From: Adineta vaga
Taxonomy: Eukaryota > Animalia > Rotifera
Assembly (NCBI GenBank): GCA_021613535.1
Contig: CP075494.1
Coordinates: 558,001-622,000 of the forward strand
Direction: 5' to 3'
Length of the DNA stretch: 64,000 nucleotides
Part shown: piece after piece, positions 993 to 60,553 of the stretch
Position numbering within the stretch: position 1 is the first letter of the stretch
Layout of the letters: each line of letters starts with the position of its first letter
Made by a program: the position numbers and the translations under genes
Notes under the pieces: model-generated
The model's input: the letters and a program-made list of their open reading frames with translations, nothing else
The model's database searches: none
What the model was told of the DNA's origin: nothing

Positions 993-1050
993 ATAAAGAA
1001 GGGTGTGGTTGTCTCTGCTATATTCAGACTCACACCCACACCCTCAATAT
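993..1050. repeat. Telomere-like palindromic site S1
   Basis: ATAAAGAAGGGTGTGGTTG-spacer-CTCACACCCACACCCTCAATAT. Confidence 0.85.
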
Positions 1051-1156
1051 CTGAATTAGAATGACAATGGAATAAACCATTAAATTCATTATCAACTTAT
1101 ATAATAAAGAAATACAAATTTATATTTATCTTTATAATAAAATTTCATTTAGTTCT

Positions 1157-1934
1157 TTATTCAAAAGTAATTGACATTGTCTGTGAGACTGCACCACTTG
1201 TACTACATGTTTGACCATTAATTCCACCCCAATTTGTACTACCCAGACATGGTCTTAATACATAACCTTGTGCACAATTACAATATCCATTTGTAGTTAT
1301 CTCATAACCAGATCCACATGTTCCAACTCTCCAAGAAACTCCATTTGAAACTGTAACTAATGTTGTATTATATCTTAAAGCAATTGCAAGTGCAGTAACA
1401 ACAGTTGAATCAGTTACAGTAATACCCTCTGGATCATTTGAACCATAGATATGCATTTTCGAATAAGATGAACAATTTAAACCTACTCGAAATGTTACCC
1501 AATCTGTACATTGCGTTGTGGGAATTACACCACTTGTAAATGCTGCAGAATAAGTTCTTGTACATGCTATAACGAGAAAAAACAATGAATTATTTCAGTT
1601 GGAATTGATCGAAAGACTTACGTGATGTTGTAGTATCTAAAAATAAAAGAAAAAAAACAACAAAAGATTGAATATTATAAATTTTTGAAATTTACCAAGT
1701 ATAATAACTACAATTGGTATTATAATTGCTGCTAATACAAGAAGTGTTAAGAGAACTAATAATTGAATACATATTAATCGTGAAATTGAACATCGAGATC
1801 TTTAAAAGAGAAAAATAAATCATAAAATGAGAATAAGGAAAATAAATAAACTTTGGCTTGTTTTGTTGATTTTGATATACAATTCTCGGCTGTTCAGATA
1901 TTTGTTTAGAAGAAGTTTCACTCAATTTCGTCAT
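1157..1934 (-). CDS. Spliced single-pass membrane protein with C-terminal Cys-rich extracellular domain (paralog of 24907-25848)
   Basis: ATG at 1934, small exons with a TM segment, last exon CTRTYSAAFTSG...NWGGINGQTC...QTMSITFE*; clear similarity to the 24907-25848 locus. Confidence 0.7.
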
Positions 1935-2540
1935 CTTATATAATGTATTGTTTATTAGTGTAAAAGTAAAAATGAACGAAGTAGTCGAAAACTTTTTTTC
2001 TTTCTTTTTTATGTTTAAAAGTACAACAATTTACCTTTGGAAAAAGAAAACAAGCAATGCTTGTCAAAATAGATGTGTGTGTGTTATTCTCTTAAAGAAA
2101 TTATGCTTTTAGTTAAATATGAATAAAAGACGTAAGAGAAAACAGTAAGGAACAGTTACTTTTCTTAAAACATCACACATTTTTTGCATTCTTTTTCTTA
2201 TTGTTATGTGTAGAAAACGTGCATGATCATTTATCCTTTTTAAACATCAATTTCAATTCATTAAGACCTCCTATCGCACTCAAAAATCGATTTGAGCTCA
2301 TATAACTGAAACTTCCCATGGAATATATGATCTTTGAAGTTTTAGAATATGCAATCAATTACCTGAACTTCGAACAATATTCATTAATCTTTTATATTTA
2401 AAAGAAAGATTTATTGAACCAAAAATATTACCTATGGAAATTCTTGTTTACACATATAAATATATTTAAATAACTATATTTATCACTTTGTAGAAAATGT
2501 GATAAAATACAGTCAAAATTTTTGATTAAAGCAAGACTGA

Positions 2541-2590
2541 ATGAGAGTAAGAGAAAAACGTTGCATCTGCAGCACACCCACACCTTTTAA
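2541..2590. repeat. Degenerate palindromic site S2
   Basis: Right arm CACACCCACACCTTTTAA; weak left arm TGAGAGTAAGAG. Confidence 0.45.
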
Positions 2591-2773
2591 TCTTCGTATC
2601 GTGATAACAAGAGCAATAGGTATTAAATAATGCGCATTATTTGATCCTTTTAATCTTCCTAATGTAAAATGTAGTATTTTTCGACGAAAAAAAAATCAAT
2701 TAAATTTTTAGTATTTCAATGAAAACTGATAATTATATCGAGCGATCATTTTCATTCAGTGATTTTTCTCACT

Positions 2774-3937
2774 ATGTTCGTGCTTCTAGTTCTCCTCGTT
2801 TTACTCCCAGGTTATATTGCCATTTAATCACGTAATGCTTATGTTTTACCATCAGAAATCACTTCTCTTATCGATAATCGACACTGTCGTTTTTATGATG
2901 CACTCAACAAACATTTGGCTTACGATGAAAAATCTCATTTAACTATGTATTCATCCAAATATTGCGAACGATTGGTTAACATTCGTACATCATTCAGAAA
3001 TACTGAATGTCAAGATACTATTCGTCAATGTTTACAAACAAATCTTCACGACAAACTAAAACCATTTAATACAACGACTAACATTTGTGATTCGATAAAA
3101 CAAATAGATCTTGAATCACATGTCAGTTGTCTAAGTAAATGTTTTCACAGACTTGAGGCTATAGATATCGAAAATTTCATAAGTATATTTAATGATACAA
3201 CTATCAATTATGCGCAACTTTGCAAATTATCTGAAAATGTTCGAGGTCATTTTAGTAAGTGATGTAAGTTTTTATTTTCTTATTAAAATATTGAATTCTT
3301 TCTTTTAGATGTACATGTACTGAATGGTAATGTGGCAGATTTTATTAAAAAACAACTTCAAAAAGTGTTCCCTGAAGGTGATATTTTAAAATGTACTATT
3401 AAAGAGAAAGAAATACAAGAATCGGCTACAGATATCAAACTAATAAAAAAGATATTGGGTCAAGTCAACAAAATTAAAGGAAATATTAATTTAGTAACTG
3501 AAAAGAACAAAACAATTGGAAATGATTTCAAGACTATTCGAGACATCGTTAAAGAAATAGAAAATGACCCAACAGAAATTAGAAGTGGATTAAAAAATAT
3601 TCTCGAGAAAAGTAATACAATTTCAACAAATTTGATAATGATTGTGGAGACCATCGAGAGTCTCGACAATGAAACAGATCTATCGACATTAATGGCTCAG
3701 TTTAATATGGTGACAGAAAGTGGTCATGATCTTCGTTTTATTCTTATTTCGATTAATAGTATCATCAAAAATATTGGAAATGGTGTGAAAAGTATTGAGG
3801 AAGGTCTATCATCTCTTGTCAAACAGATTGAAGAAGGTATTGATAGAATCTATTCAATCTTCGATACACTATATACTATCAAAGATACAATGTTTGATTT
3901 GGTTGAATCGTTAACTAAAAATTGTAGTAACATTTGA
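2774..3937 (+). pseudogene. Secreted protein with Cys-patterned N-domain (stanniocalcin-like spacing) and helical/coiled-coil C-domain; in-frame TAA at 2825-2827
   Basis: ATG 2774 (MFVLLVLLVLLPG, signal-peptide-like) is in frame with ORF 2915-3262 but interrupted by TAA; intron ~3255-3309; exon 2 heptad-rich. Confidence 0.55.
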
Positions 3938-4145
3938 AAAATTTATCATTTGTGATTCAAATAAAACCACATAAAAAATTTAACTTTGTCACATTCTGAA
4001 AAGAAAACATTACTTTTATGCTGCGGAAACACATAACTTATATAAAGAACACGCTTTGTGAGAGACATCATTTTTTATGAAATAGTATTTTAACTAACAA
4101 AGATCGAGTATTTAGCTTATAGTACGTGAGATCAACAATAATACA

Positions 4146-6032: not shown

Positions 6033-6102
6033 TGATGGGTGTGGGTGTGGGTGTGGGTGTGGGTGGAGATACAGTAAGATGCAATCTCACCCACACCCTC
6101 AA
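6033..6102. repeat. Telomere-like palindromic site S3
   Basis: (GGGTGT)4GGGTGGAGAT-spacer-ATCTCACCCACACCCTCAA; pairing extends into the spacer (GAGAT/ATCTC). Confidence 0.9.
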
Positions 6103-6425
6103 CATGCTTTTTGACGTTGTGAAGCCCAAATCGGTTGTCAGTATTTCAAAAGACTGACATTTGATGTTAGAGATCAAGAGCTCTCCTCCCCATGCGCCAG
6201 CACCAATGATAGAGAATATAAATCAGAATGGATCACTATCAGTATAGATGAGAGCATAGGTGTCTTTTATGTCCCTACATCTTCACCTGTATCTACAGCC
6301 ACATCCACACGTACTTAAGATAATTAACTGTAATTTTTTCCTTTATATTCTTAATCAATAATGGTAAAAAAAGGGAGTCAGTTTGCGATTATTTGTTGGT
6401 AGCCAACTACGCGCTTAGAAAAGGT

Positions 6426-7526: not shown

Positions 7527-8591
7527 ATGTATCCTTTAAAATGCTATATCCATAATCTTACCAGGTTGCAATGGAGTCGGGCGTGGGTTTGGGTGAAGAG
7601 AAGAGTATCACCCACACGCACATCCTCAAGATTTACCATTCTTTCGTATAACTGTCTGGCCTCACATTTAGCTACTCCTGAAGTGTGTCCTCGATCAGAT
7701 CCCAACTATTTGCAGTTTGCCTATCGGTCAAAAGTACTCGAGCAAGAGTTTCGGCAACTTAATGCTGACATTGCGTGCTTACAGGAAATCGTTATCGATG
7801 ATTTTCATACATGGCTTTTGCCATTTATGCTTTCATTGGGCTATGCTCAAGGGCTACATGCTAAAAGTAGCAAATCGACTATGGGAGTGGCGATTTTCTT
7901 CAAGAACGACAAATTTTCTCTAGTTGAACATCGCTGTGTTGACTATCATGCTCGAGCTCAACCAGTCTTCTCTTCGCTGGAAAACGGGAACAGTGGACTT
8001 CTTTGTGTATTGGAAATCCTCGATGATTTTCACAAACGAAAAATATGTGTTGCCAATACACATCTGTCACATCACTTCGAACTACCACAGATTCAACTTT
8101 TTCAATTAAAAACGCTTTTAGCCGAAGTGGAAAGCATGGCGTCTTTTTCTTCATTTGTGCTTGTCGGCGATTTAAACAGTTCCTGGTTATCAGTGACCGT
8201 CAATTACATTCGTCACGGATGCATATCAGAAACTTCACCGTTCTTCAAACGCTTGCTCGTTGTGTTCACGCCGATATTCAACGGTGACGCACAGAAGGCC
8301 ACCGATTATCTAAATGAAAAACATCATTATTCCGATGAAAAACTGTTGTTAGCATACAATAAGCAAACATTCGAAATGATATTTACCGTTTACAATGTGC
8401 CTCTGTGGAGTAGCACAATTGATTATATCTGGTTTGAACCCGATCACATGCGACCTATCGAATTACTCGATGCACTGACAAACGATACTGGCCTCGTACA
8501 TTTGCGCAATTTCACTCTACCGAATGCGGAACATCCTAGCGATCAATTGCCTATTATGGCCCGACTGCAGTTGCTACCGCCCACTTACTGA
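7527..8591 (+). CDS. EEP-family phosphodiesterase (CCR4/Nocturnin/Angel/PDE12-like), intronless; N-terminus encoded by site S5
   Basis: Motifs FTILSYNCLA, ADIACLQE, ANTHL, VGDLNS, IDYIWF and PSDQ(H)LP. Confidence 0.85.
   Translation: MYPLKCYIHNLTRLQWSRAWVWVKRRVSPTRTSSRFTILSYNCLASHLATPEVCPRSDPNYLQFAYRSKVLEQEFRQLNADIACLQEIVIDDFHTWLLPFMLSLGYAQGLHAKSSKSTMGVAIFFKNDKFSLVEHRCVDYHARAQPVFSSLENGNSGLLCVLEILDDFHKRKICVANTHLSHHFELPQIQLFQLKTLLAEVESMASFSSFVLVGDLNSSWLSVTVNYIRHGCISETSPFFKRLLVVFTPIFNGDAQKATDYLNEKHHYSDEKLLLAYNKQTFEMIFTVYNVPLWSSTIDYIWFEPDHMRPIELLDALTNDTGLVHLRNFTLPNAEHPSDQLPIMARLQLLPPTY
7579..7632. repeat. Telomere-like palindromic site S5 (inside the 5' end of the EEP ORF)
   Basis: GGGCGTGGGTTTGGGTGA-spacer-TCACCCACACGCACATCCTCAAGAT. 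Confidence 0.85.
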
Positions 8592-8763: not shown

Positions 8764-8826
8764 ATCTGGGAGGGTGAGTGGGTATGGGTGTGTATCTTTC
8801 CTCTATACCACCTACCAACACCCTCA
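8764..8826. repeat. Telomere-like palindromic site S6
   Basis: ATCTGGGAGGGTGAGTGGGTATGGGTGTG-spacer-ACCACCTACCAACACCCTCA. Confidence 0.75.
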
Positions 8827-9000
8827 GCGACAACATATATAGTCGGTGGACTAGTGAATGTTATCACTTTAGATAATGCTCTAAACACTATGTCGACATG
8901 CATATCACGTGTATCGAGTTCAATGTCACACGAAGGCGACATTAATGATTTTCGAGTTTATAGTCGAGAATTATCTTCAAATGATATTCATACACTATAG
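8827..9000 (+). pseudogene. C-terminal fragment of a LamG/concanavalin-A-like domain gene
   Basis: GDINDFRVYSRELSSNDIHTL* matches the LamG_3 C-terminal motif G.IDE.RIY.RAL...EI; no upstream exons, starts right after S6. Confidence 0.55.
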
Positions 9001-9489: not shown

Positions 9490-9553
9490 ATCTTGAGGGT
9501 GGGTGTGGATGCAGGTACCGTAAGAACGAATTTCATCCATACCCTCTTTTATT
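9490..9553. repeat. Telomere-like palindromic site S7
   Basis: ATCTTGAGGGTGGGTGTGGATG-spacer-CATCCATACCCTCTTTTATT. Confidence 0.9.
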
Positions 9554-9907: not shown

Positions 9908-9965
9908 GAGAGGCTGTGAGTGTTTCTCTAACTGTTACCAAGAGACACACCCATATCCTTTTTAT
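9908..9965. repeat. Degenerate palindromic site S8
   Basis: GAGGCTGTGAGTGTTTCTC-spacer-GAGACACACCCATATCCTTTTTAT, 35 bp beyond the F-box gene stop. Confidence 0.6.
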
Positions 9966-11725: not shown

Positions 11726-12021
11726 TTTCTTTCGAAACATTTTTCAGATGCAAAAACAAAAGAATACTTCCTTCTAATTTTCTTCTTGATAAGTAAAATA
11801 TTATCACATCCAATGATATGTCGCTCAATAGTAGAGGTCGCAAGTTTATTATCTGTTTTAATAGGGTTTGGTGAAAAGCAGAGATGCGTACGGTTAGGCT
11901 TTTTTTAGATTTAAACCAAACCGAAACCGAAAAAGACAGTTCATCAATTTTATTACGGATAGTTATAGCTATGCAATCACTCTATGAGTTCGTTCATTCT
12001 TTTTAAAATGATAATTATCTG

Positions 12022-12046
12022 TTGAGGGTGTGGGTGTGAAGGAGAT
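12022..12046 (+). repeat. Half site S9 (left arm only)
   Basis: TTGAGGGTGTGGGTGTGAAGGAGAT, no C-rich arm visible. Confidence 0.65.
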
Positions 12047-12469
12047 AACGAGGCACAAGCTAACGAGGTTGTACGAGATCTGTTGTAAGAATTGCAAAAT
12101 TCATCGATGTTGATGGTTAATGGGTCATGGCGATTGCACCGTCAGTCGTTACAAACAGTCTTTTTTTCTATAAATGAATGAATTCTAAGGAACAACAAAT
12201 TTTAATAGATATTCCGTGTTCGAAGTGAAAATATAAATGTTAGACAAACAGTAACAGTTACATTAATCTCCATTCTTGGAATATCTCAAGGACTACATTC
12301 TCAACGTCAAACACAAGACATAACTATTCTATAAGTTGACAAGAAAAGTACGATGAATTAATTTTAATTTTCTCTCTTAAATGATTTCTATTATAGCTTC
12401 TTCTTTTGATATTCTTTTCCTAATATCTTTTGCTCATATCATGTCTCGACAACTGATGCTTACAACCTG

Positions 12470-14423: not shown

Positions 14424-14594
14424 GAAAATTAAAAAAGAAAACTTTGAAATATTTCACCAAAATTGATTTTTCTTTTTACCTTCGTTGAGTGTATCGATGT
14501 AATGTTTTTCTCAATTATGTTTAACTGAAGTTTAATTAATATATAAAAAATATTTCTTTACAAAGTTTCTTTTAATGAATTATCTAATGTTTAA

Positions 14595-14660
14595 TTGAGG
14601 GTGTGGGTGGGGGTGAAGATATAGATATGAGTGAAGAAGATATACCGACAACCTCTTTAG
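14595..14660. repeat. Telomere-like palindromic site S10
   Basis: TTGAGGGTGTGGGTGGGGGTG-spacer-ATACCGACAACCTCTTTAG. Confidence 0.75.
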
Positions 14661-16814: not shown

Positions 16815-18480
16815 AATTATAATTTCAAAAATACGAAGTTTATTCGACGATTAATGACGGGAAACGAAGAGTGGTGAAGAAGCACAGAGAAAGCTCGCGG
16901 TTTTATTGCACACAACCAAAAGTATACGTGATGAACCGCAAATGTTTTTTTCTTTTGTTATCGATTGCATCTGGTTTCTCTCATCTTTTTTTAGCTTTTT
17001 TTTCTTCTTTTGAATAGACTAGATCATTTGTATAGAATCTTCATATCTCTGGATTTAACCATGCATTACACACAGAATGATGAATATTGTTCGTTTAATA
17101 TCTATACATTTGTGTCCATTCTTGTTTATTGATTGACAGATTCTATGCGGCCTTAACGTACGATTTTATACAAAGAAAATACCAAATGACGCGTTTTTTT
17201 CTCGATATGATTCAAACAACAAAAAGTACTGTATGAAGTGTCCTTGAGAAGAAACATGCTTCGTTTTTATGTATCATCAAGGTAAATATAATGAGGAATA
17301 GATAATTTACAAAACGTAGTCTCTTTTCGATACAAGAACTTTGAAACTTCCACTGAACAAAAAACGAAAAGTAGATGAATTGTGATCATAAAATATATTT
17401 GAAGGAAAACATCTTTTCAAATATTTAAATCTGTTTTGAAAATATGAGAAGAAAAGAATGAGTATATTTTTCTGCTTCATCGAATTTCTCCCAAATCGAG
17501 TGAAAATCCCTGAACAATAGACTAATTTGTCATTGAAATTGTTTACACTGTATACGTTTTTTTTACCTTGGTATTTTCGAAAATTGTTTTTCACAATAAG
17601 CAATCAAGTAATATCGATTTCTTATTTGAAGATTCTTCTCACAAATTTCAACATTTCTTTTTAGATAAAAGCTTAAAAACGTTACGAACAAATTGATCTT
17701 CGAGAATTTCTCATTTGTTCCGAAGAAAACTTCATTGATATAAAAGTATCAAGACTCGAAACATATTCTGATTCGTCTTTTGAAACTGATCACGAATAAC
17801 ACTTTATCGGCCTTCAAAACCTCTTTGTTCACGAAGAAAAATCGAATAGAATGAAATACCTCTTTTCAGAAAATATTTTCAAGTGAAATTTCATGTACAA
17901 TGCAAAAGTATAGAGGCAATTTTTTGAAAGACATTCGAAATGATTGCATATCGTTTGAAAATAATTGAATAATTAAACTTAAAAATAAAGAAGATTCGAC
18001 CGATAATCAACCTTGAATCTACAATGACGCATTAAATATTCATCATATATTTACTGTATACTTTCACCTTTACTCAAATAGTGTGCTTTATGAGTCACTC
18101 AAGGTGATGCTTTATAGTAGATGGCGATTAGTTAGTTTTAGTGTTGAAATACTACAAAAATGTCTCCATCTCATATCCAATAAGAGGTATACTGGTGAAT
18201 GTGTCCTCATTCTATTTACACCGACCTTCCTCAATCTAAAGGGTGAGGATGGGTGAAACTATTGAAAAAGATCTGATTGACATTCATACATTGTTGAATA
18301 TGATTCTGAATTTCATATAGTTTATGAAAATTAGTTTCGTATTAAGCATAGTAATTATGAGAAATGAACATATCAGCTAAAATGACGAGTTGAACGTCAG
18401 TAAATTATTGTCGATGTTCATGCCATGAATCATGATGTGTATGACGAAAATCAGATAGACATTTTTTAATTGATTTCTAA

Positions 18481-42095: not shown

Positions 42096-42255
42096 CCATA
42101 ATAATCTTTTTTATCACCAATGTGTTGCTTGTCATTTTGAATGTTTAAATTGGTCGGAATACCGTATACCATCGGAACTAACGATGAATTGTAATACTTG
42201 TAATGCAAGTGCATGTTGAAAAACGAGTGTTACTTGTTCACATGGAAGTATTTAT

Positions 42256-42940: not shown

Positions 42941-43291
42941 GAATATAGGCAGCGTCCGTATTCAAGTAATTTTTTAATTATAATATTGTATCTTCATTCT
43001 CAATACATTGGTACAATACTTATAATAAACGAATGTGAAATTACTGTGTTTTCTGTCGCTCAGGGAAAATGACAAACAGTATCGAACATGTTTTTTGAAC
43101 CCCTTATATTCTCGAGTGGGAAAATTCTGCTGTCCCTGACAAGCAAACGTGAGATATGAGAATGAAGCAGATGAATAAAAATAAGATTTTTATAAAACTA
43201 ATATCTTACTATACATATAAGTGAATAAGTAAGGAAAAAACCTTTTGTAACGGAATTAAATAAAATATATTATGATTTTTATAAAGAATTA

Positions 43292-43756: not shown

Positions 43757-44107
43757 GTCAAAAATGAAAATGGTAAATAACTTCAAACGTATATGCTAAA
43801 AAATGAAATTAATAGAGAAGAAAGAAAATTTGCTAATGGTTAATTCAAGTGTGACTAATAAAATGAGAATGATTTAACTTTTGAATTGAAAAAAGTTATT
43901 TTATCTGTTTTATTTTAACTCTAAAAATTAAACGTCGAATTATATTGAGGAAAGAGTATCTTATCTATTTGTTTTTAAAATGAAATAAAAAATGAACGAA
44001 AAGATTTTTTGTTAATATGTTGCTTATTTCTTTCTTTGAAACTAATAATTATTTCGGTACTTTGAAAATTAACACATGACTTACTTCAAGTTTGATGATG
44101 ATATAAA

Positions 44108-44182
44108 AATAAGATGGGTGTGAGTTTGGAAGGGGGCAAGTCAATGTCTCTATCCGCTCTCACTCACATCCACCCTCAAAAT
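44108..44182. repeat. Telomere-like palindromic site S20
   Basis: AATAAGATGGGTGTGAGTTTGG-spacer-CTCACTCACATCCACCCTCAA. Confidence 0.8.
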
Positions 44183-44332
44183 ATGATTTGAATAATGCTT
44201 TTTATTAGGTTAAATATGAGCACAACACAACATCTTTCATTGGAGATTTAATATAGTAGGATAAAAATAAGTTTGTTTTTTTCCTATTCAATTGTATAAT
44301 AAACTTAACGTAAAATATATACGGAAAAGTAA

Positions 44333-45358
44333 TTAGATTGTTGGTATGTTATGTCTTCGACATCGTTTAAGTATTTTTCTTTGAATAATTTGTTTTAATT
44401 CTTGTCGAAATAAACCGGATGTTGAAATAAAATTGATAAATGTTAAAGCATAACCAAGATAAATCATATCATAAAAGATATTATTCATAAATGTGTCGAT
44501 CAAAGCACGTGATCCTGATAATGAACTAACACCAAGATATGTTCGATAAATTGTGTACACAGGATATGGTACATTTAAAATCAAATAAATAATAATTTGA
44601 TTAGCTAACATTTTATGAAATTGTATGTCTTTTCTTGATATTCGACCATTCGTAAGAATCTGATTTCTTTCAAGTATTTCAGTTGGTGAAACACGTTGTT
44701 TACTTTGATGAATATTACGAATAGTAAGTAATCCAAAGAATAACATTGGAATAATGGGAAAAAATCCATTTTCTGCTGTGATAAAAAAACTAAAATATTT
44801 CATAACATTTACTACGAGAATTCTACATTTGTCATTTGTGACACCAAAGGAAATAAGAACTTGGATATAGAAAAGAAGCCAAAAAATAGTAGCGATAATG
44901 ATAAGATAAAGAGCAATCTTTGGTGAACTCCATCGACGAAAACGAACACTGTGAGAACTACAAAAAAAACGATCTGCTGCAGCAAATATAATATTATAAC
45001 GAGCAGTAGCCGCAAACACATAAAAAATATAGTAACGGGTTTTACAAAACCATTCTGGAAGTGAATTAACTGGAACACCATAACCATATTGAATCATTCG
45101 AATAAAAGTTGCCGAATTGAAAACAAAAATTTGTGAAATACTTGAAGCTATGAAATATATAGCACAAGGACTTTTACGAAATACTGGTTGATAAAATACA
45201 ATACAAGTACCAATCGATCCAATACTGCCAACAATCCACAAAATACAGTCAAGACTTTGTGAAGCGATTTGAATTAAAAAATTGAAAAGAGTTATCAATT
45301 GAATTTCTCTGTCTAAAGCAACAACTACAGTAATAGTAATTATTGTCGTGTTACTCAT
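44333..45358 (-). CDS. Class-A (rhodopsin-like) orphan GPCR, intronless
   Basis: Seven hydrophobic segments; FRKSPCAIYFIA, WFCK, AADRF and FRQEL helix 8. Confidence 0.9.
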   Translation of the reverse strand: MSNTTIITITVVVALDREIQLITLFNFLIQIASQSLDCILWIVGSIGSIGTCIVFYQPVFRKSPCAIYFIASSISQIFVFNSATFIRMIQYGYGVPVNSLPEWFCKTRYYIFYVFAATARYNIIFAAADRFFCSSHSVRFRRWSSPKIALYLIIIATIFWLLFYIQVLISFGVTNDKCRILVVNVMKYFSFFITAENGFFPIIPMLFFGLLTIRNIHQSKQRVSPTEILERNQILTNGRISRKDIQFHKMLANQIIIYLILNVPYPVYTIYRTYLGVSSLSGSRALIDTFMNNIFYDMIYLGYALTFINFISTSGLFRQELKQIIQRKILKRCRRHNIPTI

Positions 45359-46606
45359 GTTTTAAACTTTAAAAGAAAAAGAAGCAATAAGTCTGTCAAT
45401 TATAGGAACCTTTTTTAGATAAAAATAAATGCTTTATTTATAGAAGATAATTAAGGATTTGTATTTATTCAAGCGATAATAATTAAAACGATAATAAATT
45501 GGCACAGAGCGATGAACATATCAAAAAAGGTTTATTATAGTCTTTGAGTCTTTTATTCTGCAGGTTTTGAAGGATTATTCGAAATAGTTTGTGAAAGAAT
45601 TTATAATTTAATAATAAATACAGAAAACATATCATTTAAAATCTAATTATTAAGTGAAATATCAAGTTTAACTGGATATTTGAAGAGTATCTTAAATAAT
45701 CAAGAGAATTGCACTAACTTTAAATGTAGTTTATAAAGATTTCGATTAGTTTTGTAATAAGAACATGTTCTAAGTTAGTGAAGCCGATCAAATTATTCAA
45801 AAAACATTTTTAGTTTTAAAACCTCACAACTTTTGTTCTAAGATGTAAAAGCGCATTAATTAACATCATAGATCAAATGTTTAGAATAAATACTATGAAG
45901 TTTGTATAGAACTATTTCGACTTATCGAGTATCAACACCTTTTATTTCATTATTAATTTGTTTTTATGAGAACAGTTACCGAATTCAGGATGTGCACTGT
46001 TTGTACTTCCACCAATTCAATATATCAAACATATCATCTTCATTTTAATATCTTAGTCATATTTTTTGATAATCTCTCAACAATTTTTCTAAACTTAAAT
46101 ATTCTCAACTGGAAATTTTATGTTAAGAAATCGGCAATAATGAAAGTATATATTCAATTACTAATAAAGATTATGCTCAAAAATCCTCATTGATTACTGA
46201 AATGATCATATCTCTTCTCCACCTTCACCAGCGAAGAACCTTTTCATAATGACGGAGCACTTGTATAGCAGAAAAAAAATTATGGTGTAGAAAATGACGC
46301 ATCGTCATCAACTTATAATAGAAAAAAGACGGCATTGAAGTACGTTTAGGTACAAAAAGCACGTTTTTTTCTTCTCTTTCGTCTAATACACATTAGCCCG
46401 TGCAATAATATGTCGTGGTATAAATACCGACAGTTTCTTTTTCTTTTTCTAGCATTCTTGCCATTTATTATATTAACGTACGAATAGAGTAACATTCAAG
46501 TAGATACAGGCAAATATTCCACAGATACTAAATTATTTTTTTTTAACCTATCTATTTCATTGTTAATCATTCTATTTCTTATGTTTAGATATTCATAGTT
46601 TGAAAT

Positions 46607-47879
46607 ATGCAACCAGCACCACCACCAATTAGTGCTCTTGCACGATATCGTATTCTAGCACCTACTGCAGCTGTTCGTGTATCACCATTATGTCTCGGAG
46701 CAATGTCACTTGGCGATGCTTGGTGTGAATTTTTGGGTACACAATCAAAAGAAAACTCCTTTAAGATACTCGATGCTTTTTTTGATGCTGGTGGAAATTT
46801 CATCGATACTGCAAGTAATTATCAAGATGAACAAAGTGAAATAATAATAGGAGAATGGATGACTAAACGACAGAATCGAAGTCAATTGGTTATTGCGACT
46901 AAATTTAGTACTGGATATCGATCAGATTGGAATAAAGAACCGATTCATGTGAATTTTGCTGGTAATTCAACGAAATGTTTACATGAAAGTGTTGCTGCCT
47001 CTCTGAAAAAACTTCAAACCGATTACATCGATTTACTCTATGTGCATTGGTAATAATTTCTCTTTTTCTCTCAAATATTATTAAACAATATTAGCTCTGA
47101 AAACATTATAGGTGGGATTATACTTGTTCTATTCCTGAACTCATGCAATCACTTGATCATTTGGTTAAAGCAGGCAAAGTGTTATATTTAGGTGCCAGTG
47201 ATACACCAGCATGGGTTGTTGCCAAAGCAAATCAATATGCTCGAGATCATGGAATGCGTCAATTTTCTGTTTATCAAGGTTTGTACAATGCTGCGAAACG
47301 TGATGTAGAAAGAGAGATTCTTTCAATGGTACAACATGAAGGAATGGCTTTCGCACCATGGGGCACCTTAGGTAGAGGTAATTTTAAAACCAAAGAGCAG
47401 ATAGAAGCAATGGAGAAGGCTGGTGATAAAGGAAGAACAGCTGGTGGTCCAGTCAAAGGCAAGATTATTGAATAACTTTGAAAACATATTTTATAGTGAG
47501 TTTTCAACTAAAATTCGTCTTTTTTGAAATGTTTGTAGGTCCATCTGCAGAAGATCAAGCTGTGACTGCTGTATTAGATAAAATTGGCAAGAGTAAAAAT
47601 GTCTCTCTTACTCAAATTGCCCTCGCTTATGTCATGGCAAAACAACCTTATATCTTTCCTATTGTAGGTATTCGAAAAGTTGAGCAATTACACGATAACA
47701 TCGAAGGATTAAAAATACGTTTAAGTAAAGAAGAAATAGAAGAAATCGATAAAGCATATGACTTCAAACTTGGATTTCCCGTGGATTTTATTGCACAACA
47801 TCCAAGTCAAAATTGGCTTTTAAAAGTGGCTGGTAATTACGATTGGGTGGAAGAAATAAAAAGTCTCAATGTGAACTAA
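46607..47879 (+). CDS. Aldo-keto reductase, fungal aryl-alcohol dehydrogenase/NorA-like subfamily, 3 exons
   Basis: VSPLCLGAM, GGNFIDTASNYQDEQSE, IATKF, LQTDYIDLLYVHWWD, GKVLYLGASDTPAW; introns 47050-47112 and GC-AG 47459-47538. Confidence 0.93.
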
Positions 47880-47949
47880 AATCAAATGATTATCATATAC
47901 ATATTAATTCTCTTTTATTAACAAACACATATAATTTCTTATAAATAAA

Positions 47950-48012
47950 ATCTTCAGAGTGAGAGTGAATGTAATTATGTTCTTTCCCTATCCTCAGTCG
48001 CATCTCTTTTTA
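47950..48012. repeat. Degenerate palindromic site S21
   Basis: ATCTTCAGAGTGAGAGTG...CATCTCTTTTTA just after the AKR poly(A) signal. Confidence 0.35.
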
Positions 48013-48034
48013 CAATACAATATTAAATCTATAT

Positions 48035-48583
48035 CCCTTTCGGGACGGGAAACCACTATAGTGGCTTCTGGTAATTTTTATACAGAGAGATATATTATTC
48101 ATTGATGATCGAAAGTAGCTGCATATGCGTTAGAGTATCTCATTGTAGTGATATGTATATGTATATCTAATGATATATATGTGATCATTCTTCATTTTCT
48201 TTTGTTTCTGCCTTGTCTAAGCTTATCACATTGGATCATTCTGATTTATTTTTCTGCACACGCATATGAGCATGGTTTGAATGAGAGGAGAGTTTTAGAT
48301 GGTGTCATCAGTTGTGCATCTTCTTTTATTTTCCATTAGTAATCAATGGGGGACTATGACAGTGTATTGACTGTAGCACGGTAGTCAAACGACAAAAAAA
48401 CGATTTCGCACCAGATATAAATGTGCAGATTGCGGTGTCGGTTTATGCGTCGCAAATTGTTTTCGAGAATATCATACCTGGAAAGCGTATTGATAAACTT
48501 TGATGAAAAATAAAAACAGTCGATTCCTAAAATCTTATTTTTCTACTTCTTTTTTTCCAAGAAATAATCCCGTCCTGAAAGGG
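48035..48583 (+). mobile_element. Internally deleted piggyBac-superfamily element (549 bp) with ATAT TSD
   Basis: 16-bp TIRs CCCTTTC(G/A)GGACGGGA; ATAT on both flanks; 48407-48493 encodes RTRYKCADCGVGLCVANCFREYH, the piggyBac C-terminal Cys-rich domain. Confidence 0.88.
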
Positions 48584-49654
48584 ATATGGGCAAAATCATT
48601 TTAATAGCGACATGACACCGTAAAATTGCAACATGTGTATATCAGGCTAATGTAGTTCTTCAGAGCTGTTTTTTTTATATTGCATACATGTTCAAGTGTT
48701 ACAAAGCCAGTAACCATTTACCCTTTGATAATGATGGGACTGAATCCTCTTGTCTCCACCCTGGCTAAGCCAATATAACCACATCGTCTCCTCCAAGATA
48801 GTACATAAAGAATATACATTACCTCTTGCATCCATAATATATATATTGCTTTACCGTTATATGATCTCATGTTATAAACCATGTTTGAGGATTAACATGC
48901 TCTACATACCAAGGGAAGAAATCTATACTGTGAACAATGTTTGAGGATTTAAATATTTTACATACCGAGGGAAAAAATCCATATTGACATGTTTTTAAAG
49001 GGAAAGATGTCTTTTTCTCCCTCTCTCTGTCTAAATATGTATATATATATGAAGAACAAGTCGGATGAAATAATATTGTCAGATTTGCATTTTCGAGAGA
49101 GCCCGTAGAAATTATTTCATAGTATAAGATTGTTAAAAGTTTCACTTGTTTTTCGCTTAATCCTGGTATATTTTTGCATGTATGATACATTCAAAACACA
49201 GTCAATTCAACATGTTCTCTTCAAATGTATGTAATGTTAAATTATTTTCTTCACGAATCATAGGCATTCTATTGGAATCCTTAACTTAGCGCTATTATGC
49301 TGCAATTCAAGATCAACTGATCTAAGTTTGGGTTATCAGTTAGATTCTTATAATTCGTGAAGAAAATAAATTTGCAGGATAAACCTTCTGTACATTTGCA
49401 GAAGAAATGTAAACCATATTTGGATGCATTATACATACAGATATCTATGAGAATAAAGAGAAAAAAAACGGAAGCCTTTTATGTGGACTGCTCACGATTG
49501 CGAATGCGATTTTTCCCACTTGAATGCTATACCATATACATCTGTAGATATTACAAAATATGAGTATTTGATATTTTTATGACAGATATATTAATTAGTA
49601 TTCATTGATTTCTTTTATTTTAAGAACTTATTTGTGCTTTGTCTTTTTGCGAAA

Positions 49655-51037
49655 ATGCCAAAAATTGTCGAAACTAATACTTCATTTGAAGATATTGATA
49701 CGAATCGGGACGGAAAGTAAGAATCAAGAATTTTCTGTTAAAATAATAAATTTATACATATATATATATATATGGATATAGTATTGATGAACATGAATTT
49801 CGAAATTGGGCTTCAAATACTGGAAGAATATCTTCTCCAACGTATGAAACATCAACTAGTGGCGTGTATCTTCGTAATACTAGTGGTAGCCGATTGAATC
49901 GAAACAATTATGAAACATCGGCAAGTGAAATTTACCTTAATGGTGAAAATATTAGACGATTGCAACAAAATACATATGATACACGCGGAAGTGTAACAGT
50001 AGCTGGTGATTTTACGAATGAATCGGTGATTGAAACACATAGTTTGGAAGAGACCAACAGATATCTTGAAAGATCGGTTGATATTTATAAGGATCGTAAT
50101 CCATTAGTTATTCAAAAAGCAGTAACGGACAAACCGATAACATATCAACAACGAGTCCTTGTTCGATATCTTCAACCGCCAGCTGTTCGACCACCAGGAG
50201 TAATCAAACAAAATATTTGTAAATACAATTTTACTAATGTTTATATAATTTTAGCCACTCGTGATTAAACAAGTGCGTGCACCTCAACCAGCACCACTTC
50301 CACCACTTACCATACGTCAATATATGCAAGCTGCTGTTGCACCACCTCCACTTATCTTACGTGAACGACCGCCCACACCACCACCAGCTATTCCTAGTGA
50401 AACAGGTTAACAAAACAACAAATTTAAATTACATATATATATATATCTATGAGATTAATCAATATATTTCATTTTATAGTTGTTCGTCAGGTACCCGCTC
50501 TGCCTCCTCCACCACGATCAGTTATTATCGAACGTTTTCCATCTGCTCCAGAAAAACCACGTAAAAAGAATTATATTCACTTTTGGTATTGTTGTTTTCT
50601 CACGATTTAGGTGATATTATCATTGAACGATGGCTTCCTTATGGACCTTTACCTGAACGTCGTACAATTGTTGAAGAGGCTTCGGGTGCTGCTGTAGCAT
50701 ATCCAGAACCACGGAATAAAATCATTGTTTATGAACGTGCTGAACCACATGTAGTTCGACAATTTCACAAAGAAGGTGTTGTCAGCGAAGATCCTGCCAA
50801 TTATGTAGCTCGCTACGGAGATTCACTTCTAGATTCAACAACACTTATCAAAATGGCTCGTAATGCTGGTGTTTTTGAAGATTTGGTAAATTTGTTTCCA
50901 TATAATGGTGAAAAATATCTAATGAATTGTTTTCCTAGTCTCCACCCGTAGTACCATATTCGAATATACGTGAAAGTACCAGCGATTATGAATTATCAAG
51001 TAGAAACAGATACGTACAGGGTAAGACTTGTTTGTAA
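49655..51037 (+). CDS. EF-hand plus Pro/Arg-rich protein, copy 3 (no TE insertions)
   Basis: Same exons as copy 1. Confidence 0.8.
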
Positions 51038-51512
51038 TTTCTATATCCTATTCTTCTCTAAAACTTCGTAATTTTGACACATTTATATCTGAAGAGGAAA
51101 ACATTGATTGAGGAGCGTACGAATAACTGTAGAGTCTAGTGTGCTCATACTGTAAAAGCTAAAACGACTTAGTTGAACATTACTTATCGCTTGTACTCAA
51201 TATTACAAGACTTTCACTCGATTTTATCTTATAATATTTTAAAATAGATAACCAATACATAAGCAGTAGATCGACTCGACGACATGGATTATTTGATTTC
51301 TCTCAATATGGTCTGCTTCCATCTGATTGTGAGTATATCAGTTTCATCATATATCATAGCTAGTGGTCTTGTTTGCTTGTTCACAATATTAGATACTCCT
51401 GGTATGAAATTTACTCGGAAATTCGTACGACCAAGTAAGTCCATTCATTTCATTTCTCCGGGTTGAACTGTATTAAATATATATAGCAAACTTCTCCTTT
51501 CCTTCATCAACA

Positions 51513-52122
51513 ATGTGGTCAATTAGAACTGCTAAATATAAGGAGCAAGTTACTGATGGTCAAATTACAAGTGTTACTGTAGAATTAATCGAAGACGGCG
51601 TAGTTATTCATTCTCGTACAGTGACCAAACAAGAGTACAAACGAGGTGAGGATAATCTATTCATAAGTCTATTACATATGTATGTAATCTTTTGTTTATT
51701 CATTCTATTGTAGCAAATGTTTCCTCATCAGTTCCGAAATTGGCATGGAATGAGTTCATACAAGTCTTGCAAGTATTCATGTTAGGCAATAATCAAGAAC
51801 GAGAATCCGATATTGCTCGCGCCTTCGACATTCTCGACCAAGGTAGAAGAGGCCTCTACAACCGAACAATCAGTCTGTCGGATGGTCTGATTTCACCTGA
51901 TGAATTACGAGCCTTTTTTTCAATCCTTACCGATGAAGTAATTTTTAGTTTAATTGAAAAGTTGAGTTTATTTTGTCTTTAATCATTGTTTTGTTTTAGT
52001 ATCGTGTTGATCTTTGTGTTTTTCTGGCTGACACAGATGGATCTGGTAAAATTAACTTGTCTGAATTTACTCGAATGGTGAAATCAGGATTGGCAAGAGA
52101 TATTATCTGCGAATGCATCTAA
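51513..52122 (+). CDS. Small EF-hand protein, copy 3
   Basis: Near-identical to 31471-32080. Confidence 0.85.
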
Positions 52123-52878
52123 TCGTCTGAATGGATTTGACGAGAACTTTTAAAATGCTTTTGAAGGGGATGCTTTTTTAATCTAGATTATAGAATAAAA
52201 TTTGGTGAAAAATTACAATGACTTTCATACGAAAAGAGAAAATAGCCTTAATCTTTCTCTGTCTGTTTTTATTGGCATTCAGTGGTGAATTGTCTTTAAC
52301 ATGTGTGTTGCATAGTATTCTACTTAGTTTTCACTTTTCAAACATAAAATAGACAATAATGAATGAAAAATTCAATAGAAGAGTATATAAAATAATTTTT
52401 CAGTTTCATTTAGTTCTTAGTTTCAATATTTATTATATTTGCATACGAACAAATTAAAGAATATCTTAGATAATTATGATGAGTACATGTTTTGCATACT
52501 AGAAAGCTGTTGAGACTAATAAAATTACAAATGCAATCATCAGGACATTTAGTCAAAATAGAAAATGCGATATGTACTTGACCAGAATTTAGTGTATCAA
52601 TATGACACATTGTATACACTGTAAAACAAATTGGTGTTTTACCGAATGTAGAAGATTTTACATTCTTCTATCGATCGATTTTAAGTTCGGGTTTCGGATA
52701 TTTGATCGCAATTGCGATAATTGTTCGATTGTAACTGATGGAAGTCAGAATGAAAGTAACATAATTAGTTAAGCTGTATATATAGGCGATTGATGATCAT
52801 TATCCTTATAATGAGCAGCAATATTCAATCAACACACTGCTATACAAAGGTGATTGTCGAAGTCACATACTACTACTA

Positions 52879-52896
52879 TCACCCACACCCATCCCA
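52879..52896 (-). repeat. Half or degenerate site S22
   Basis: TCACCCACACCCATCCCA, ~90 bp beyond the F-box gene stop. Confidence 0.5.
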
Positions 52897-58734: not shown

Positions 58735-59335
58735 CGAAATTTTTGATAAAATAATTTTATATTTATGCAATCGAATATTTTCTTGACGATATTACGCTTC
58801 AATAATATGACGTCTCGTCTCGACTGAATGCATCGAAATATCACGATTATGATTGATTTCTTCGTACTATTTCGAAAGGCGATACCTGTATAGTATAGCC
58901 ATACATTTAGAAAAGAAAAAAACAAATACCATGTACAGCATATAATGTGATATAATTGATGCATGATATATTCGAAAATTAAAACTAATTATAAATAAAT
59001 GTGAAAACTTCGGATTTTATCCGAGAGCTATGTGTATTGTAATGGGTGTATGAGAAATATGAGTCACTCTCGAATGTCTGATCATTAAAATTATCGACAG
59101 TACTCTTTTTAATGAGCTTGATTTTTGATCACTTGTTTTTTAATAAATTTTCGTGTTTGGACTTATCGAAATGACGGTTATAAGCAACGAGAATACATCC
59201 TTTTCCGCAATCCTGCTGAATAGGATGACTACTCTTAGAATAAAGATAACATATCGAATACCAAGATCTAATAGAATAATAATTATTATTATAACGATGC
59301 GTATCATCATTTTTGATTCACGCCGTGCACGAGCC

Positions 59336-59406
59336 TCTTGAGGGTGTGAGTGCGGGTGTTGGTGATAAGCTAGTCTTCATTCCACACCTACACCCACATC
59401 CTCAAG
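59336..59406. repeat. Telomere-like palindromic site S24
   Basis: TCTTGAGGGTGTGAGTGCGGGTGTTGG-spacer-CCACACCTACACCCACATCCTCAAG. Confidence 0.9.
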
Positions 59407-59852
59407 TAACTATGGGCTAGCTTTTCGATAATAACAGGGAGCTTTGCAACTTTTCCTAATATGATCATAAACTTCTGTGTTTTCACAAGGATGCAAAACA
59501 TGTAGGTACAACAGCTACTGACAAAACTGATTATTTTACCTTAGATGAAATCTGTATACTTTTTATTATAGTGAACAAGTTGGACAGATAGTAAGATTCA
59601 ATAGAACTTCTTGTACATGTAAAAACAATGTTTTATGATCAGTTTTAAACAAGTGAATTTAATTTCCACAATGTGTGGTTTTTTTATTGAGTTAAAAGTT
59701 GATTTTGTTATTTGATTTTATTTATATTGTGTTTGGAATAAAAATTTAAGTAACGTAAAAGAAAGTATTATCTTTCTATTCAAATGAATCAGTCTTGAAA
59801 CTTATAAGAAAACAGAGCTATAGCATTCTTTCAATTAATCTATTCCCATAAG

Positions 59853-59918
59853 TTAAGGGTGTGGGTGTAGATGTAAGTAACGGTTCTACACCCATCCACC
59901 CACACCCACCCTCTAGAT
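59853..59918. repeat. Telomere-like palindromic site S25
   Basis: TTAAGGGTGTGGGTGTAGA-spacer-TCTACACCCATCCACCCACACCCACCCTCTAGAT. Confidence 0.9.
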
Positions 59919-60217
59919 GTCCACTACAAGGACATATGAAAACACGTCCACTTGATGTCGCTAGTTGAACACAACATTCAGATGGTGATAACGCTGTTTC
60001 ATTAATTAATCGACAGCATGTCTTCGAATATATTCCACATATTTGTCCAGGACAAAAAATATCAGTTGAGTTATTACATGATTCAAGTGTTCGTCTACAT
60101 GGCCTTTCCATACATTTCTCTCATCACAACAGATTCCACTATAACATTCTTTTGAAGACGTACAAGCTGATTGATCTCTTAAACAAATAGCTTTTAATAC
60201 AAGTTCATTAAGTCGAC
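59919..60217 (-). pseudogene. Cys-rich (knottin-like) coding fragment filling the interval between S25 and S26
   Basis: AICLRDQSACTSSKECYSGICCDER, then a frameshift, then CMERPCRRTLESCNN...CPGQICG...CC...ECC; no in-frame start codon, signal peptide or promoter room. Confidence 0.55.
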
Positions 60218-60277
60218 ATCTTGAGGGTGTGGGTGTGGGTGTTCATTTTATCATCAACTACGACCGCACCCACACCC
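60218..60277. repeat. Telomere-like palindromic site S26
   Basis: ATCTTGAGGGTGTGGGTGTGGGTG-spacer-CCGCACCCACACCC. Confidence 0.9.
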
Positions 60278-60449
60278 GGAAGTCCATCATATACATTCGG
60301 AAGTGCCGCACGAATATACCATGCCATGAACGAATGTCTGAAAGAGTTTTTCATAAAACTACTTCGTTGAGTCTCAAAATGATCCTCTGAGATTTTCCGG
60401 TTGAACTGCTCTTATGGGTATGAAACATACCTTGATAATCAAATGATCA

Positions 60450-60553
60450 ATCTTGACGGTGCGGGTGTGGTTGAATGTTTTTTCTGTACCCTCACCCTCA
60501 CCCACACCCACACCCACACCCACCCACACCCACCACACCCACACCCTCAAGAT
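60450..60553. repeat. Telomere-like palindromic site S27 with expanded C-rich arm
   Basis: ATCTTGACGGTGCGGGTGTGG-spacer-(ACCCTC)2(ACCCAC)n...ACCCTCAAGAT. Confidence 0.92.

Follow-up and report, generated by a model that had tools for sequence, protein, structure and literature searches.

Along the subtelomere of Adineta vaga chromosome 5, short palindromes built of TGTGGG, the telomeric repeat of this species (PMC7943196), recur between genes, and the question arises as to what produced them and whether they move the genes that they separate. The window analysed here is a stretch of 64,000 nucleotides lying 558 to 622 kb from one end of the chromosome. An earlier note on this DNA had proposed a cassette array, with the sites acting as recombination or processing junctions for accessory genes. 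Our analysis upholds the sites as junctions, but speaks against an integron-like recombination system. They resemble scars of chromosome breaks that were healed as by telomerase and then rejoined, and seams that were used more than once. Specifically, we give roughly even odds to the view that they are junctions where broken ends that telomerase, or a reverse transcriptase related to it, had lengthened were joined head-to-head and later re-broken.

Each site runs from a G-rich (TGTGGG)n tract through a spacer of 10 to 48 nt to a C-rich tract. The arm ATCTTGAGGGTGTGGGTG, with up to three mismatches, occurs 17 times in the window versus 0.03 expected. A sequence profile, R1, trained on 45 sites that all lie outside the window, found 19 distinct loci at E<0.01 (993, 6033, 6274, 7579, 8764, 9490, 12020, 14592, 18481, 21900, 26954, 31101, 40876, 42050, 44108, 59336, 59850, 60217 and 60450) and three half-copies at E 0.02 to 0.13 (2566, 35877 and 52864). 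The palindromes are real, with G-rich arm, spacer and C-rich arm where the earlier note had placed them. Its list of degenerate or half copies was sound for 6249 (our 6274), 12022 and the half-copies at about 2541, 35882 and 52879; another four to five found no support, since 9908, 18179, 47950 and 54268 score E>2 and 21259 has no R1 match at all.

Table. Sites and related features of the window (window coordinates; E values are those of profile R1).
Position	Strand	Feature	Evidence
993..1050	.	Two-armed site; left arm abuts AAAGAA, right arm with leader ATATTGA	E=1.3e-7
2566..2590	.	Half-copy, C-rich arm only	E=0.13
6033..6105	.	Two-armed; five hexamers left, two right; spacer family GAGATACAGTAAG..AATCT	E=9e-14; hairpin -16.5 kcal/mol, z -2.9
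6274..6312	.	Degenerate copy	E=0.004
7579..7632	.	Two-armed, just upstream of EEP nuclease domain	E=8e-8
8764..8827	.	Two-armed, decayed; ~170 nt downstream of EEP stop codon	E=2e-4
9490..9550	.	Two-armed; left-flank homology (9038-9491) to C5:2.68 Mb stops at arm's outer edge	E=5e-5
9908..9960	.	Claimed degenerate copy, not significant	E=2.6
12019..12047	+	Half-site: G-rich arm with TTGA leader, no C-rich partner	E=7e-5
14592..14660	.	Good left arm, decayed right arm; spacer contains GAAGAAGATATAC	E=3.7e-6
18179..18265	.	Claimed degenerate copy, not significant	E>2
18481..18557	.	Best-formed site; left-flank homology (18299-18489) to C2:1.06 Mb stops where G tract starts	E=2.7e-14; hairpin -23.3 kcal/mol, z -5.8
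21900..21960	.	Two-armed, between convergent ASC channel and amine oxidase genes	E=5.9e-6
26954..27029	.	Two-armed, leader on both sides	E=9e-7
27931..52659	+	Three diverged tandem copies of a ~5-kb segment (27931-32620, 36625-42050, 48840-52659)	
31101..31162	.	Site in copy 1 of the three-copy segmental duplication; copy-3 homology resumes at 31154, within right arm	E=5.6e-8
35877..35903	.	Half-copy, C-rich arm	E=0.03
40876..40937	.	Paralogue of the 31101 site, in duplication copy 2	E=3.6e-7
42050..42091	.	Duplication copy 2 ends at an arbitrary base; leaderless GGGTGTGGGTGT directly after	E=0.009
44108..44182	.	Two-armed, ~150 nt downstream of GPCR stop codon; spacer family GCAAGTCA.TGTCTCTAT	E=7e-5
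47950-47995		Claimed copy, not significant	E>2
52864..52891	.	Half-copy, C-rich arm	E=0.02
54268-54306		Claimed copy, not significant	E>2
59336..59408	.	First of four clustered sites; whole site 84% identical to one on C3:6.80 Mb	E=1e-10
59850..59918	.	Second clustered site	E=6e-11
59919..60217	.	299-bp non-coding piece with a site on either side; further copies at C5:625.9 kb (92%) and C3:3.82 Mb (88%)	
60217..60281	.	Third clustered site	E=1.3e-11; hairpin -16.6 kcal/mol, z -4.5
60450..60553	.	Fourth clustered site; right arm long, ~10 hexamers	E=4.6e-11

In 264 kb, 41 pairs of arms are head-to-head, one is tail-to-tail and four lie on the same strand, and spacer lengths stay within the same tight range, none being shorter than 10 nt. 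A very rough extrapolation gives about 6,000 sites genome-wide, enriched toward chromosome ends; subtelomeres have about one site per 2.5 to 3 kb, and the chromosome centres, home of most genes, have few. Sites occupy nearly all gene boundaries of this subtelomere, at about one per intergenic region, with a spacing close to that of the genes. Site midpoints avoid ORFs of at least 150 aa: only 1 of 41 falls inside one, versus an ORF coverage of 27.6%.

The arms had been described as conserved. This is true of the telomeric hexamers that recur in them, but not of their number, which ranges between 2 and over 10 per arm, nor of the leader, (CC)ATnTTGA, which is present on only about half of the arms, the other half abutting arbitrary sequence. 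The first repeat after the leader is usually the variant TGAGGG. Within a site, arm lengths are uncorrelated (r = -0.18), and an arm is no more complementary to its own partner than to a swapped one (10.12 versus 9.79 +/- 0.30, P = 0.14). This suggests that the two arms were made independently; nothing in it points to a recombination hairpin kept intact over time. Variable repeat numbers, and arms set on arbitrary sequence in half of the cases, are what is expected from end healing rather than from site-specific exchange. Leader presence is concordant between the arms of a site (17 sites with both, 23 with neither, 17 mixed). The leader has one degenerate position amid conserved neighbours, and among arms with a letter other than C at -5, 33% still have AT at -7/-6, versus about 12% expected; it looks like a motif more than just a variable start of copying. 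Its outer limit is fairly sharp near -8/-9; conservation decays gradually outward. The leader travels with the arm in one paralogue comparison (A2) and stays with the flank in two (copy 3 at 51196, and the C3 copy of the 299-bp piece).

Spacers had been thought unrelated and unique to each site, which our comparison refutes: they group into families common to sites with unrelated flanks. Their mean best local score is 21.7, versus 15.9 +/- 0.3 in shuffles, and a score of at least 24 is reached by 16 spacers, with 0.3 expected. Families in which both ends are conserved are present on chromosomes 3, 5 and 6.

Homology between duplicated segments stops at arms far more often than chance predicts. 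Among alignment ends of duplicated segments, 8 of 77 fall at an arm, versus 2.07 expected and a maximum of 6 in 500 trials. At least seven individual cases of homology stopping at an arm were found in A. vaga, among them ends at 9491, 18489 and 60219/60221, and one within a C-rich arm (-63897 versus -32005). In A. steineri, three tandem-duplication boundaries are exactly at an arm (unit starts 8030, 9648 and 15017). Differences among the three ~5-kb tandem copies cluster at sites. In a ~3% divergent contig (2013 run), 171 different letters stand at the outer edge of a left arm (21901-21907).

In two truncated copies, fresh repeats stand right at the point of truncation. Duplication copies 1 and 3 continue through the point matching 42050, where copy 2 stops, and repeats are added straight onto the ...GCATAGCA of truncated copy 2, a healing signature. 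Relative to its paralogue A2, A1 is missing 300 nt and bears a fresh perfect G tract at the place of the decayed one of A2. The species' own telomeric repeat is found internally without target-site duplication, and on a broken end for which an unbroken copy exists, as in interstitial telomeric sequences inserted during break repair.

Homology was one-sided in every paralogue comparison, and none of them yielded a collinear pair of filled and empty loci; the flanks of a site have separate histories, and we found no collinear empty locus pointing to a one-step insertion. Three indels of 170 to 1000 bp lie exactly at the outer arm edge. They involve non-coding pieces (the sequence was read for one), and the variable pieces examined are non-coding shards, not genes. 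At C5:625.9 kb, the 299-bp piece and the next arm stand about 1 kb apart, with other DNA between them.

How could such seams be generated? That broken DNA ends of A. vaga can acquire telomeric repeats we count as established. Joining two healed ends would then leave the G-rich strands facing each other, as (TGTGGG)n, a short filler and (CCCACA)n. The seam may remain fragile and re-break; one side would then be resected, gain new repeats and be joined once more, in many cases to different DNA. Through such repeated breakage and rejoining, the flanks would turn over, while the core would survive and spread with duplications. Part of the patch may be copied from an RNA template, either telomerase RNA beside its template region or an Athena-type 3' end; such RNA-templated copying is suggested both by the leader in front of the usually variant first repeat TGAGGG and by spacer families that recur. 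To our knowledge, no rotifer telomerase RNA has been described. Seams would last only where harmless, which would explain their intergenic position and their pile-up in the gene-family-rich chromosome ends.

The head-to-head excess, the independence of the arms and the arbitrary sequence that half of them abut, the direct healing signatures, the homology ends in A. vaga and A. steineri, the one-sided homology, the lack of target-site duplications and the like structures in Rotaria argue for this scenario, to the even odds given above, as do the published neotelomeres and interstitial telomeric sequences described below. Against it, spacer families with both ends conserved across chromosomes fit the copying of whole units better than random filler. 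The motif-like leader and its concordance between arms, the tight spacer length, the lack of hammerheads near C-rich tracts, and the leader remaining with the flank in two comparisons also count against it.

Several known systems can be compared. In ciliate breakage sequences (Cbs in Tetrahymena, E-Cbs in Euplotes), a short conserved motif adjoins the point of telomeric-repeat addition, and the chromosomes stay broken in the somatic nucleus. In A. vaga, by contrast, the healed ends are joined in the germline genome and half of the arms lack the motif. Experimental deletion breakpoints in A. vaga lines were seen to carry telomeric repeats and Athena fragments, interpreted as scar-leaving neotelomeres (PMC13564844). 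Vertebrate interstitial telomeric sequences were inserted by telomerase at double-strand breaks, sometimes with fragments copied from telomerase RNA (PMC8537989); they likewise are short internal telomeric tracts without target-site duplication (PMC8537989, PMC2246262). However, a head-to-head arrangement, the rule in A. vaga (41 to 1), was seen at 3 of 41 loci with telomerase-RNA fragments (TERC-ITS), where it was attributed to a second enzyme on the other DNA end (PMC8537989). Vertebrates have tens of loci per genome, far from the density of A. vaga subtelomeres, and A. vaga sites have a stereotyped leader, spacer families, and flanks that were usually not former neighbours. Athena elements, from the same organism and associated with the same repeat, prime on exposed 3' ends, their truncated 5' end being then capped by repeats (PMC13564844, PMC3846280, PMC6431247); in these papers TGTGGG was counted as density only. 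In Athena chains, however, all tracts have one orientation and a hammerhead motif lies beside the C-rich tract, whereas the sites sampled had neither hammerhead nor reverse transcriptase nearby: the core CUGANGA...GAAA was found within 70 nt of none of 244 C-rich tracts (~0.4 Mb), and no Rfam hammerhead in 307 kb.

Alternatively, the sites may be a non-autonomous, MITE-like foldback family of 60 to 100 bp, with inverted ends CCATnTTGAGGG(TGTGGG)n, copied whole into the DNA between genes, where their telomere-like arms would then attract breakage and telomerase, giving leaderless arms and flank turnover. We consider this unlikely, although it accounts well for spacer subfamilies conserved at both ends amid unrelated flanks on several chromosomes, for the tight spacer length, for a leader that is palindromic, concordant on both arms and fairly sharply limited (CCAT precedes 89 of 567 exact half-sites genome-wide), and for a copy number apparently in the thousands. 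REP/REPIN-RAYT, foldback and MITE families are similarly short extragenic palindromes with subfamilies and hundreds to thousands of copies. However, no target-site duplication was seen around the 14 well-formed sites with both leaders, where an ordinary MITE would have left them; arm lengths are unequal and uncorrelated; conservation fades outward without a sharp stop; and homology is always one-sided in paralogues, with no filled-versus-empty pair. Nor is there a candidate enzyme: IS200-type Y1 HUH transposase (Pfam PF01797), TnpB (PF07282) and integrase-type tyrosine recombinase (PF00589) had no match in the 100.8-Mb genome, PF00589 matching 14 of 14 control genomes, and the only transposase found in 264 kb is a mariner.

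Less probable still is that the sites, whatever their origin, are kept by selection as cis-elements, be it as boundaries between subtelomeric genes, bound in pairs by a YY1-like factor or a protein that recognises telomere repeats, as hairpin terminators, or as seeds already in place for the quick capping of shattered chromosomes. Having about one site per intergenic region, and sites in both Adineta and Rotaria, would fit, as would the predicted folding into hairpins (-10 to -23 kcal/mol, with z from -2.9 to -5.8) and the leader CCATnTT, which we take to match the YY1 core. ORFs are avoided too, but purifying selection alone would equally produce this. The arms, moreover, do not co-vary, many copies are decayed or halved, gene 3' ends are not preferred over 5' ends (21 versus 19 sites), and sites are rare in the chromosome centres, where most genes lie.

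As to an array of integron type, with gene cassettes inserted and excised at hairpin sites by a site-specific recombinase, it is largely refuted and very improbable: like attC sites, these are imperfect intergenic palindromes bordering units that vary between copies, at gene boundaries with gene-sized spacing and with three pieces present or absent exactly at an arm edge, but the genome has no integrase or Y1 HUH transposase match, arms of variable telomeric hexamers differ in length without co-varying, half of them abut arbitrary sequence, spacers are common to unrelated 'cassettes', the variable pieces seen are non-coding, there is no polarity along the chromosome (spacers 10 versus 13, leaders 9 versus 14), no cassette excision or insertion was seen in the copies compared, and no collinear paralogue was seen to lack a gene 'cassette' found at the matching place of another array.

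Sites occur beyond A. vaga: Adineta steineri and a Rotaria species also carry them head-to-head, with longer arms in Rotaria. In A. steineri, one site lies within an annotated gene range (L041:13807, gene 12170-16228). In the A. vaga window, the long ORF 7527-8591 spans the site at 7579..7632, and P0057 (254 aa; 100% identical to 72% of this ORF) would begin past it.

The sites, in which a G-rich (TGTGGG)n arm, a short spacer and a C-rich arm follow one another on the reading sequence, are a real, abundant and structured feature. An 18-nt arm with at most 3 mismatches occurs 17 times in the window, against 0.03 expected. To avoid circularity, the site profile R1 was trained on 45 sites lying outside the window, which was then searched with filters off. 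Since arm lengths differ, RNAalifold derived no consensus pairing from the MAFFT alignment, and R1 is therefore a sequence-only profile. Of the roughly 27 sites claimed for the window by the earlier note, R1 supports 19 loci at E < 0.01 and, less firmly, three half-copies at E 0.02 to 0.13, whereas those at 9908, 18179, 47950 and 54268 are non-significant and that at 21259 goes undetected. Genome-wide, perfect 15+15 palindromes number 20, and CTTGAGGGTGTGGGTG has 567 exact copies (reversed control, 0), overwhelmingly within the terminal few megabases of the chromosomes. On chromosome 5, telomere-like tracts form about 107 clusters in the 264 kb of C5:358001-622000, where 10 exact 16-mers also occur; extrapolated very roughly from this single region, the whole genome would have about 6,000 sites.

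Among tract neighbours at most 70 nt apart in these 264 kb, 41 pairs are G-then-C, that is, head-to-head, one is C-then-G and four are on the same strand. Arms comprise 2 to more than 10 hexamers, with TGAGGG variants now and then. Their lengths are uncorrelated within a site (r = -0.18), and arm complementarity is 10.12 with the own partner against 9.79 +/- 0.30 with arms of other sites (P = 0.14). About half of 151 distinct arms start as GA/GGG (the slash marks the junction), preceded by TT in 89% of those; outward from TT conservation is weaker (C 48%, T 64%, A 55%, C 34%), and there is none past about -9. The arm consensus reads (C)(C)ATnTTGA, which we call the leader, then GGG(TGTGGG)n. 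The remaining arms, again about half, adjoin arbitrary, often A-rich, sequence. Leader status agrees between the two arms of a site (17 both, 23 neither, 17 mixed; chi-square about 10). In leaderless arms of both Adineta species, A. vaga and A. steineri, the junction (A)AAGAA/GGG recurs (993, 18481 and 44108 in the window; 9700 and 8080 in the A. steineri locus L040), and it may be a second leader type.

Spacers measure 10 to 48 nt (median 23). They had been described as unrelated, which does not hold: best local scores average 21.7, against 15.9 +/- 0.3 in shuffles, GAAGA is present in 22 of 57 (4.2 expected), and sites with unrelated flanks have spacer families in common, among them TTAAGAGTATAGCCTGA, TGAAGATACAGTAAG..GAATCTCA, GGATGCAAGTCAGTATCTCTATT and TGAAAGAAGAGGAGATAC, the last found on chromosomes 3, 5 and 6. 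Target-site duplications are not visible at the sites. Folded as single strands, sites reach -10 to -23 kcal/mol. The ATG in TCAAGATG was considered as a start codon and discarded, as ORFs from such ATGs have a median of 8 codons, below background.

Comparisons between paralogues are the most informative evidence. Three diverged tandem copies of a segment of about 5 kb, which has no Pfam hits, lie in the window at 88 to 98% identity, and insertions of 0.36 to 1.2 kb set them apart. Copy 2 ends at an arbitrary base, 42050, with GGGTGTGGGTGT directly after it, and copies 1 and 3 continue; copy 2 is thus truncated here, its end capped with telomeric repeats. The site at 31101 in copy 1 and 40876 in copy 2 is absent from copy 3, where homology restarts at CTCAAT within the right arm, and at another three-copy site the right flank of one copy switches within the C-rich arm. 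In a paralogue pair upstream of the window, A2 has 300 nt ending in CTTGA and then a decayed G tract, while in A1 this 300-nt stretch is missing and ...GCA is joined to a perfect three-repeat tract; beyond the tract the two paralogues agree. Such a difference fits re-breakage, resection and re-seeding. At its left end, A2 homology begins directly past a C-rich arm plus AAGATG, both absent from A1.

In genome searches, flank homology halts at the arm at 9491 and 18489. At 60219/60221, a paralogue 8 kb distant carries some 1 kb of additional DNA at the arm edge, and the 299-bp piece that separates two of the clustered sites recurs as a copy on chromosome 3. A contig from a 2013 run, about 3% divergent, carries 171 nt of other sequence on the outer margin of the 21900 arm. 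Alignment ends fall within 15 nt of a site in 8 of 77 cases, against 2.07 expected. All paralogue cases have one flank only in common, and a clean insertion of a site into collinear sequence was seen in none of the comparisons.

The question arises as to how such junctions could be generated. Most likely, the sites are a bdelloid-scale version of the scars of telomerase-mediated break repair. Both DNA ends would gain telomeric repeats on the 3' strand and then be joined, and the arms would face inward because two 3'-extended, repeat-bearing ends meet; the seam, being fragile, would be re-used repeatedly after healing and rejoining. Independent arm lengths, arbitrary junctions, capped truncations, one-sided homology and the lack of target duplications all fit end healing, rejoining and seam re-use. 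Deletion breakpoints in A. vaga carry telomeric repeats and Athena fragments, interpreted as scars of transient neotelomeres (PMC13564844). In vertebrates, telomerase inserts interstitial telomeric tracts at breaks, sometimes with pieces copied from telomerase RNA, and 3 of 41 such telomerase-RNA loci are head-to-head, which was attributed to the action of a second enzyme at the opposite end (PMC8537989). End healing alone leaves the leader and the spacer families unexplained. We propose that both could be templated by the stretches of telomerase RNA that flank its template, or by another small RNA; CCCUCAAnAUGG would then be placed 3' of the template, and for the spacer families the reverse complement would be expected 5' of the template or in some other part of the telomerase RNA.

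Chief among the rivals to break-repair scars is a mini foldback element that is copied whole. It accounts well for the spacer families and the leader, but leaves the missing empty sites, the missing duplications and the missing enzyme unexplained: the A. vaga genome has no Pfam match to Phage_integrase, Y1_Tnp or the TnpB zinc ribbon, all of which match in control genomes. Possibly, on top of either origin, sites are selected as a boundary, a protein-binding site or a telomere seed. Position and persistence are the sole positive support for such a role: one of 41 site midpoints falls inside an ORF of at least 150 aa, against an ORF coverage of 27.6%. Many sites lie 40 to 500 nt beyond stop codons, but a terminator or 3'-end element is rejected, since the nearest ORF end is the 3' end for 21 and the 5' end for 19 of 40 intergenic sites, near the values for random positions. 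The integron-like cassette array proposed by the earlier note fails, as its defining features are lacking: no integrase was matched, and unrelated flanks have spacers in common.

Other origins were discarded. Polarity along the chromosome is absent (spacer strand, 10 versus 13; leader side, 9 versus 14), on which ground one-directional terminal accretion was rejected. Fold-back copying or sister-end fusion disagrees with flanks that are not mutual inverted copies and with arms that do not co-vary. With up to 1 mismatch allowed, the unsplit sequence CATCTTGATCAAGATG, two leaders joined with no repeats, has 31 occurrences genome-wide and its reversed control a single one; the sequence lies mostly in chromosome centres, away from the ends (for example, C2:7184255-7184270), with a single exact copy and no intermediates, and is absent from the 435 kb of sequence examined. 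We therefore reject insertion into a pre-existing palindromic target; the excess may reflect coding or word usage, or the sequence may be a separate motif. A hammerhead/Athena origin of the spacers is likewise rejected: Rfam searches of 307 kb gave no hammerhead and no other family at the sites, and of 244 C-rich tracts not one carries a hammerhead core on its upstream side. An Rfam mir-466 match at 18487 reaches 27.5 bits, where the gathering score is 85, and is an artefact of a GT-rich hairpin.

Bdelloid rotifers withstand massive fragmentation of their chromosomes, and foreign genes are unusually numerous close to the chromosome ends. If the sites are indeed such seams, the genome would be a physical record of end healing and rejoining, probably with thousands of junctions, that could be dated, compared across species and matched to experimental breaks. 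The leader and spacer families may point to the rotifer telomerase RNA, and the question of interest is what templates them. We consider it rather unlikely that bdelloids have a dedicated templated break-stitching pathway, routine for shattered chromosomes and a route for sewing in fragments. In such a pathway telomerase, or an Athena-type enzyme acting as a pair, would extend both break ends from the same RNA, copying the leader CCATnTTGA first, the repeats next and a short run-on as the spacer before ligation; gene-sized and foreign fragments would be stitched in at chromosome ends, and thousands of legible seams would be left behind. Were the sites a mobile mini-element or a selected boundary, it would remain unusual for an animal genome to bear a telomere-armed palindrome at almost every border between subtelomeric genes. 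Two earlier papers use TGTGGG only through its density, as a marker of subtelomeres (PMC7943196, PMC11258130); the original Athena/Terminon papers may mention the inverted arrangement.

The A. vaga genome comprises six contigs (100.8 Mb), and the window, C5:558001-622000 with a GC content of 32%, lies on chromosome 5 some 0.56 Mb inward from a chromosome end. Its genes are ordinary host and gene-family members: pentapeptide repeat, EEP nuclease, F-box/LRR, FG-GAP, ASC channel, amine oxidase, GPCR, aldo-keto reductase and NHL. The 200 kb upstream is much alike, and the ten long ORFs tested there included one mariner transposase and no reverse transcriptase.

Features of the window and of the flanking subtelomere (unprefixed coordinates are window positions; C, chromosome; L026, L030 and L034, flanking pieces of chromosome 5)
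Feature	Coordinates	Remarks
F-box/LRR protein	10000-11517	100% identical to NCBI Adineta vaga protein
FG-GAP repeat genes	12815-12967; 54496-55389	147-153 nt tandem periodicity, reflecting the protein repeat
ASC channel gene	19512-21238	85-86% identical copies at C2:0.56 Mb and C1:15.94 Mb; homologous over the gene only, stopping about 20 nt short of the claimed, unsupported copy at 21259
Copy 1	27931-32620
Copy 2	36625-42050
Copy 3	48840-52659
Segment between first two clustered sites	59409-59852	444 bp, mosaic; 59435-59502 and 59581-59689 match two chromosome 1 places at 80-82%
Mariner-type transposase ORF	L026:8011-9066 = C5:466011-467066	Transposase_1, HTH_48
Segmental duplication	C5:479-506 kb; C5:511-551 kb	about 25 kb, 98-99% identical
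Two tRNA genes	L030:3784-3857; L034:8772-8845	at matching places of the duplication

A 2,039-nt contig of depth 367, from run X7 (guessed to be RNA), has an interior site-like stretch corresponding to 18490-18554 of the window; if it is RNA, some sites would be transcribed inside abundant transcripts.

Outside A. vaga, a locus of A. ricciae (21.7 kb, 37% GC) has no sites, and EEP homologues on contigs of up to 3 kb gave a mere hint of a decayed site downstream of one of them. Sites of this kind, with ATTGA as the leader, also occur in an A. steineri locus, where the unit boundaries of a tandem duplication fall exactly at G-arm starts (8030, 9648 and 15017). At L041:13807 and L040:19823, also in A. 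steineri, a site lies within the annotated range of a 972-aa TraB-family gene; either it is intronic or the gene model merges two genes. A Rotaria sp. Silwood1 locus shows the same head-to-head structure, with arms of 60 to 230 nt and spacers of 15 to 25 nt.
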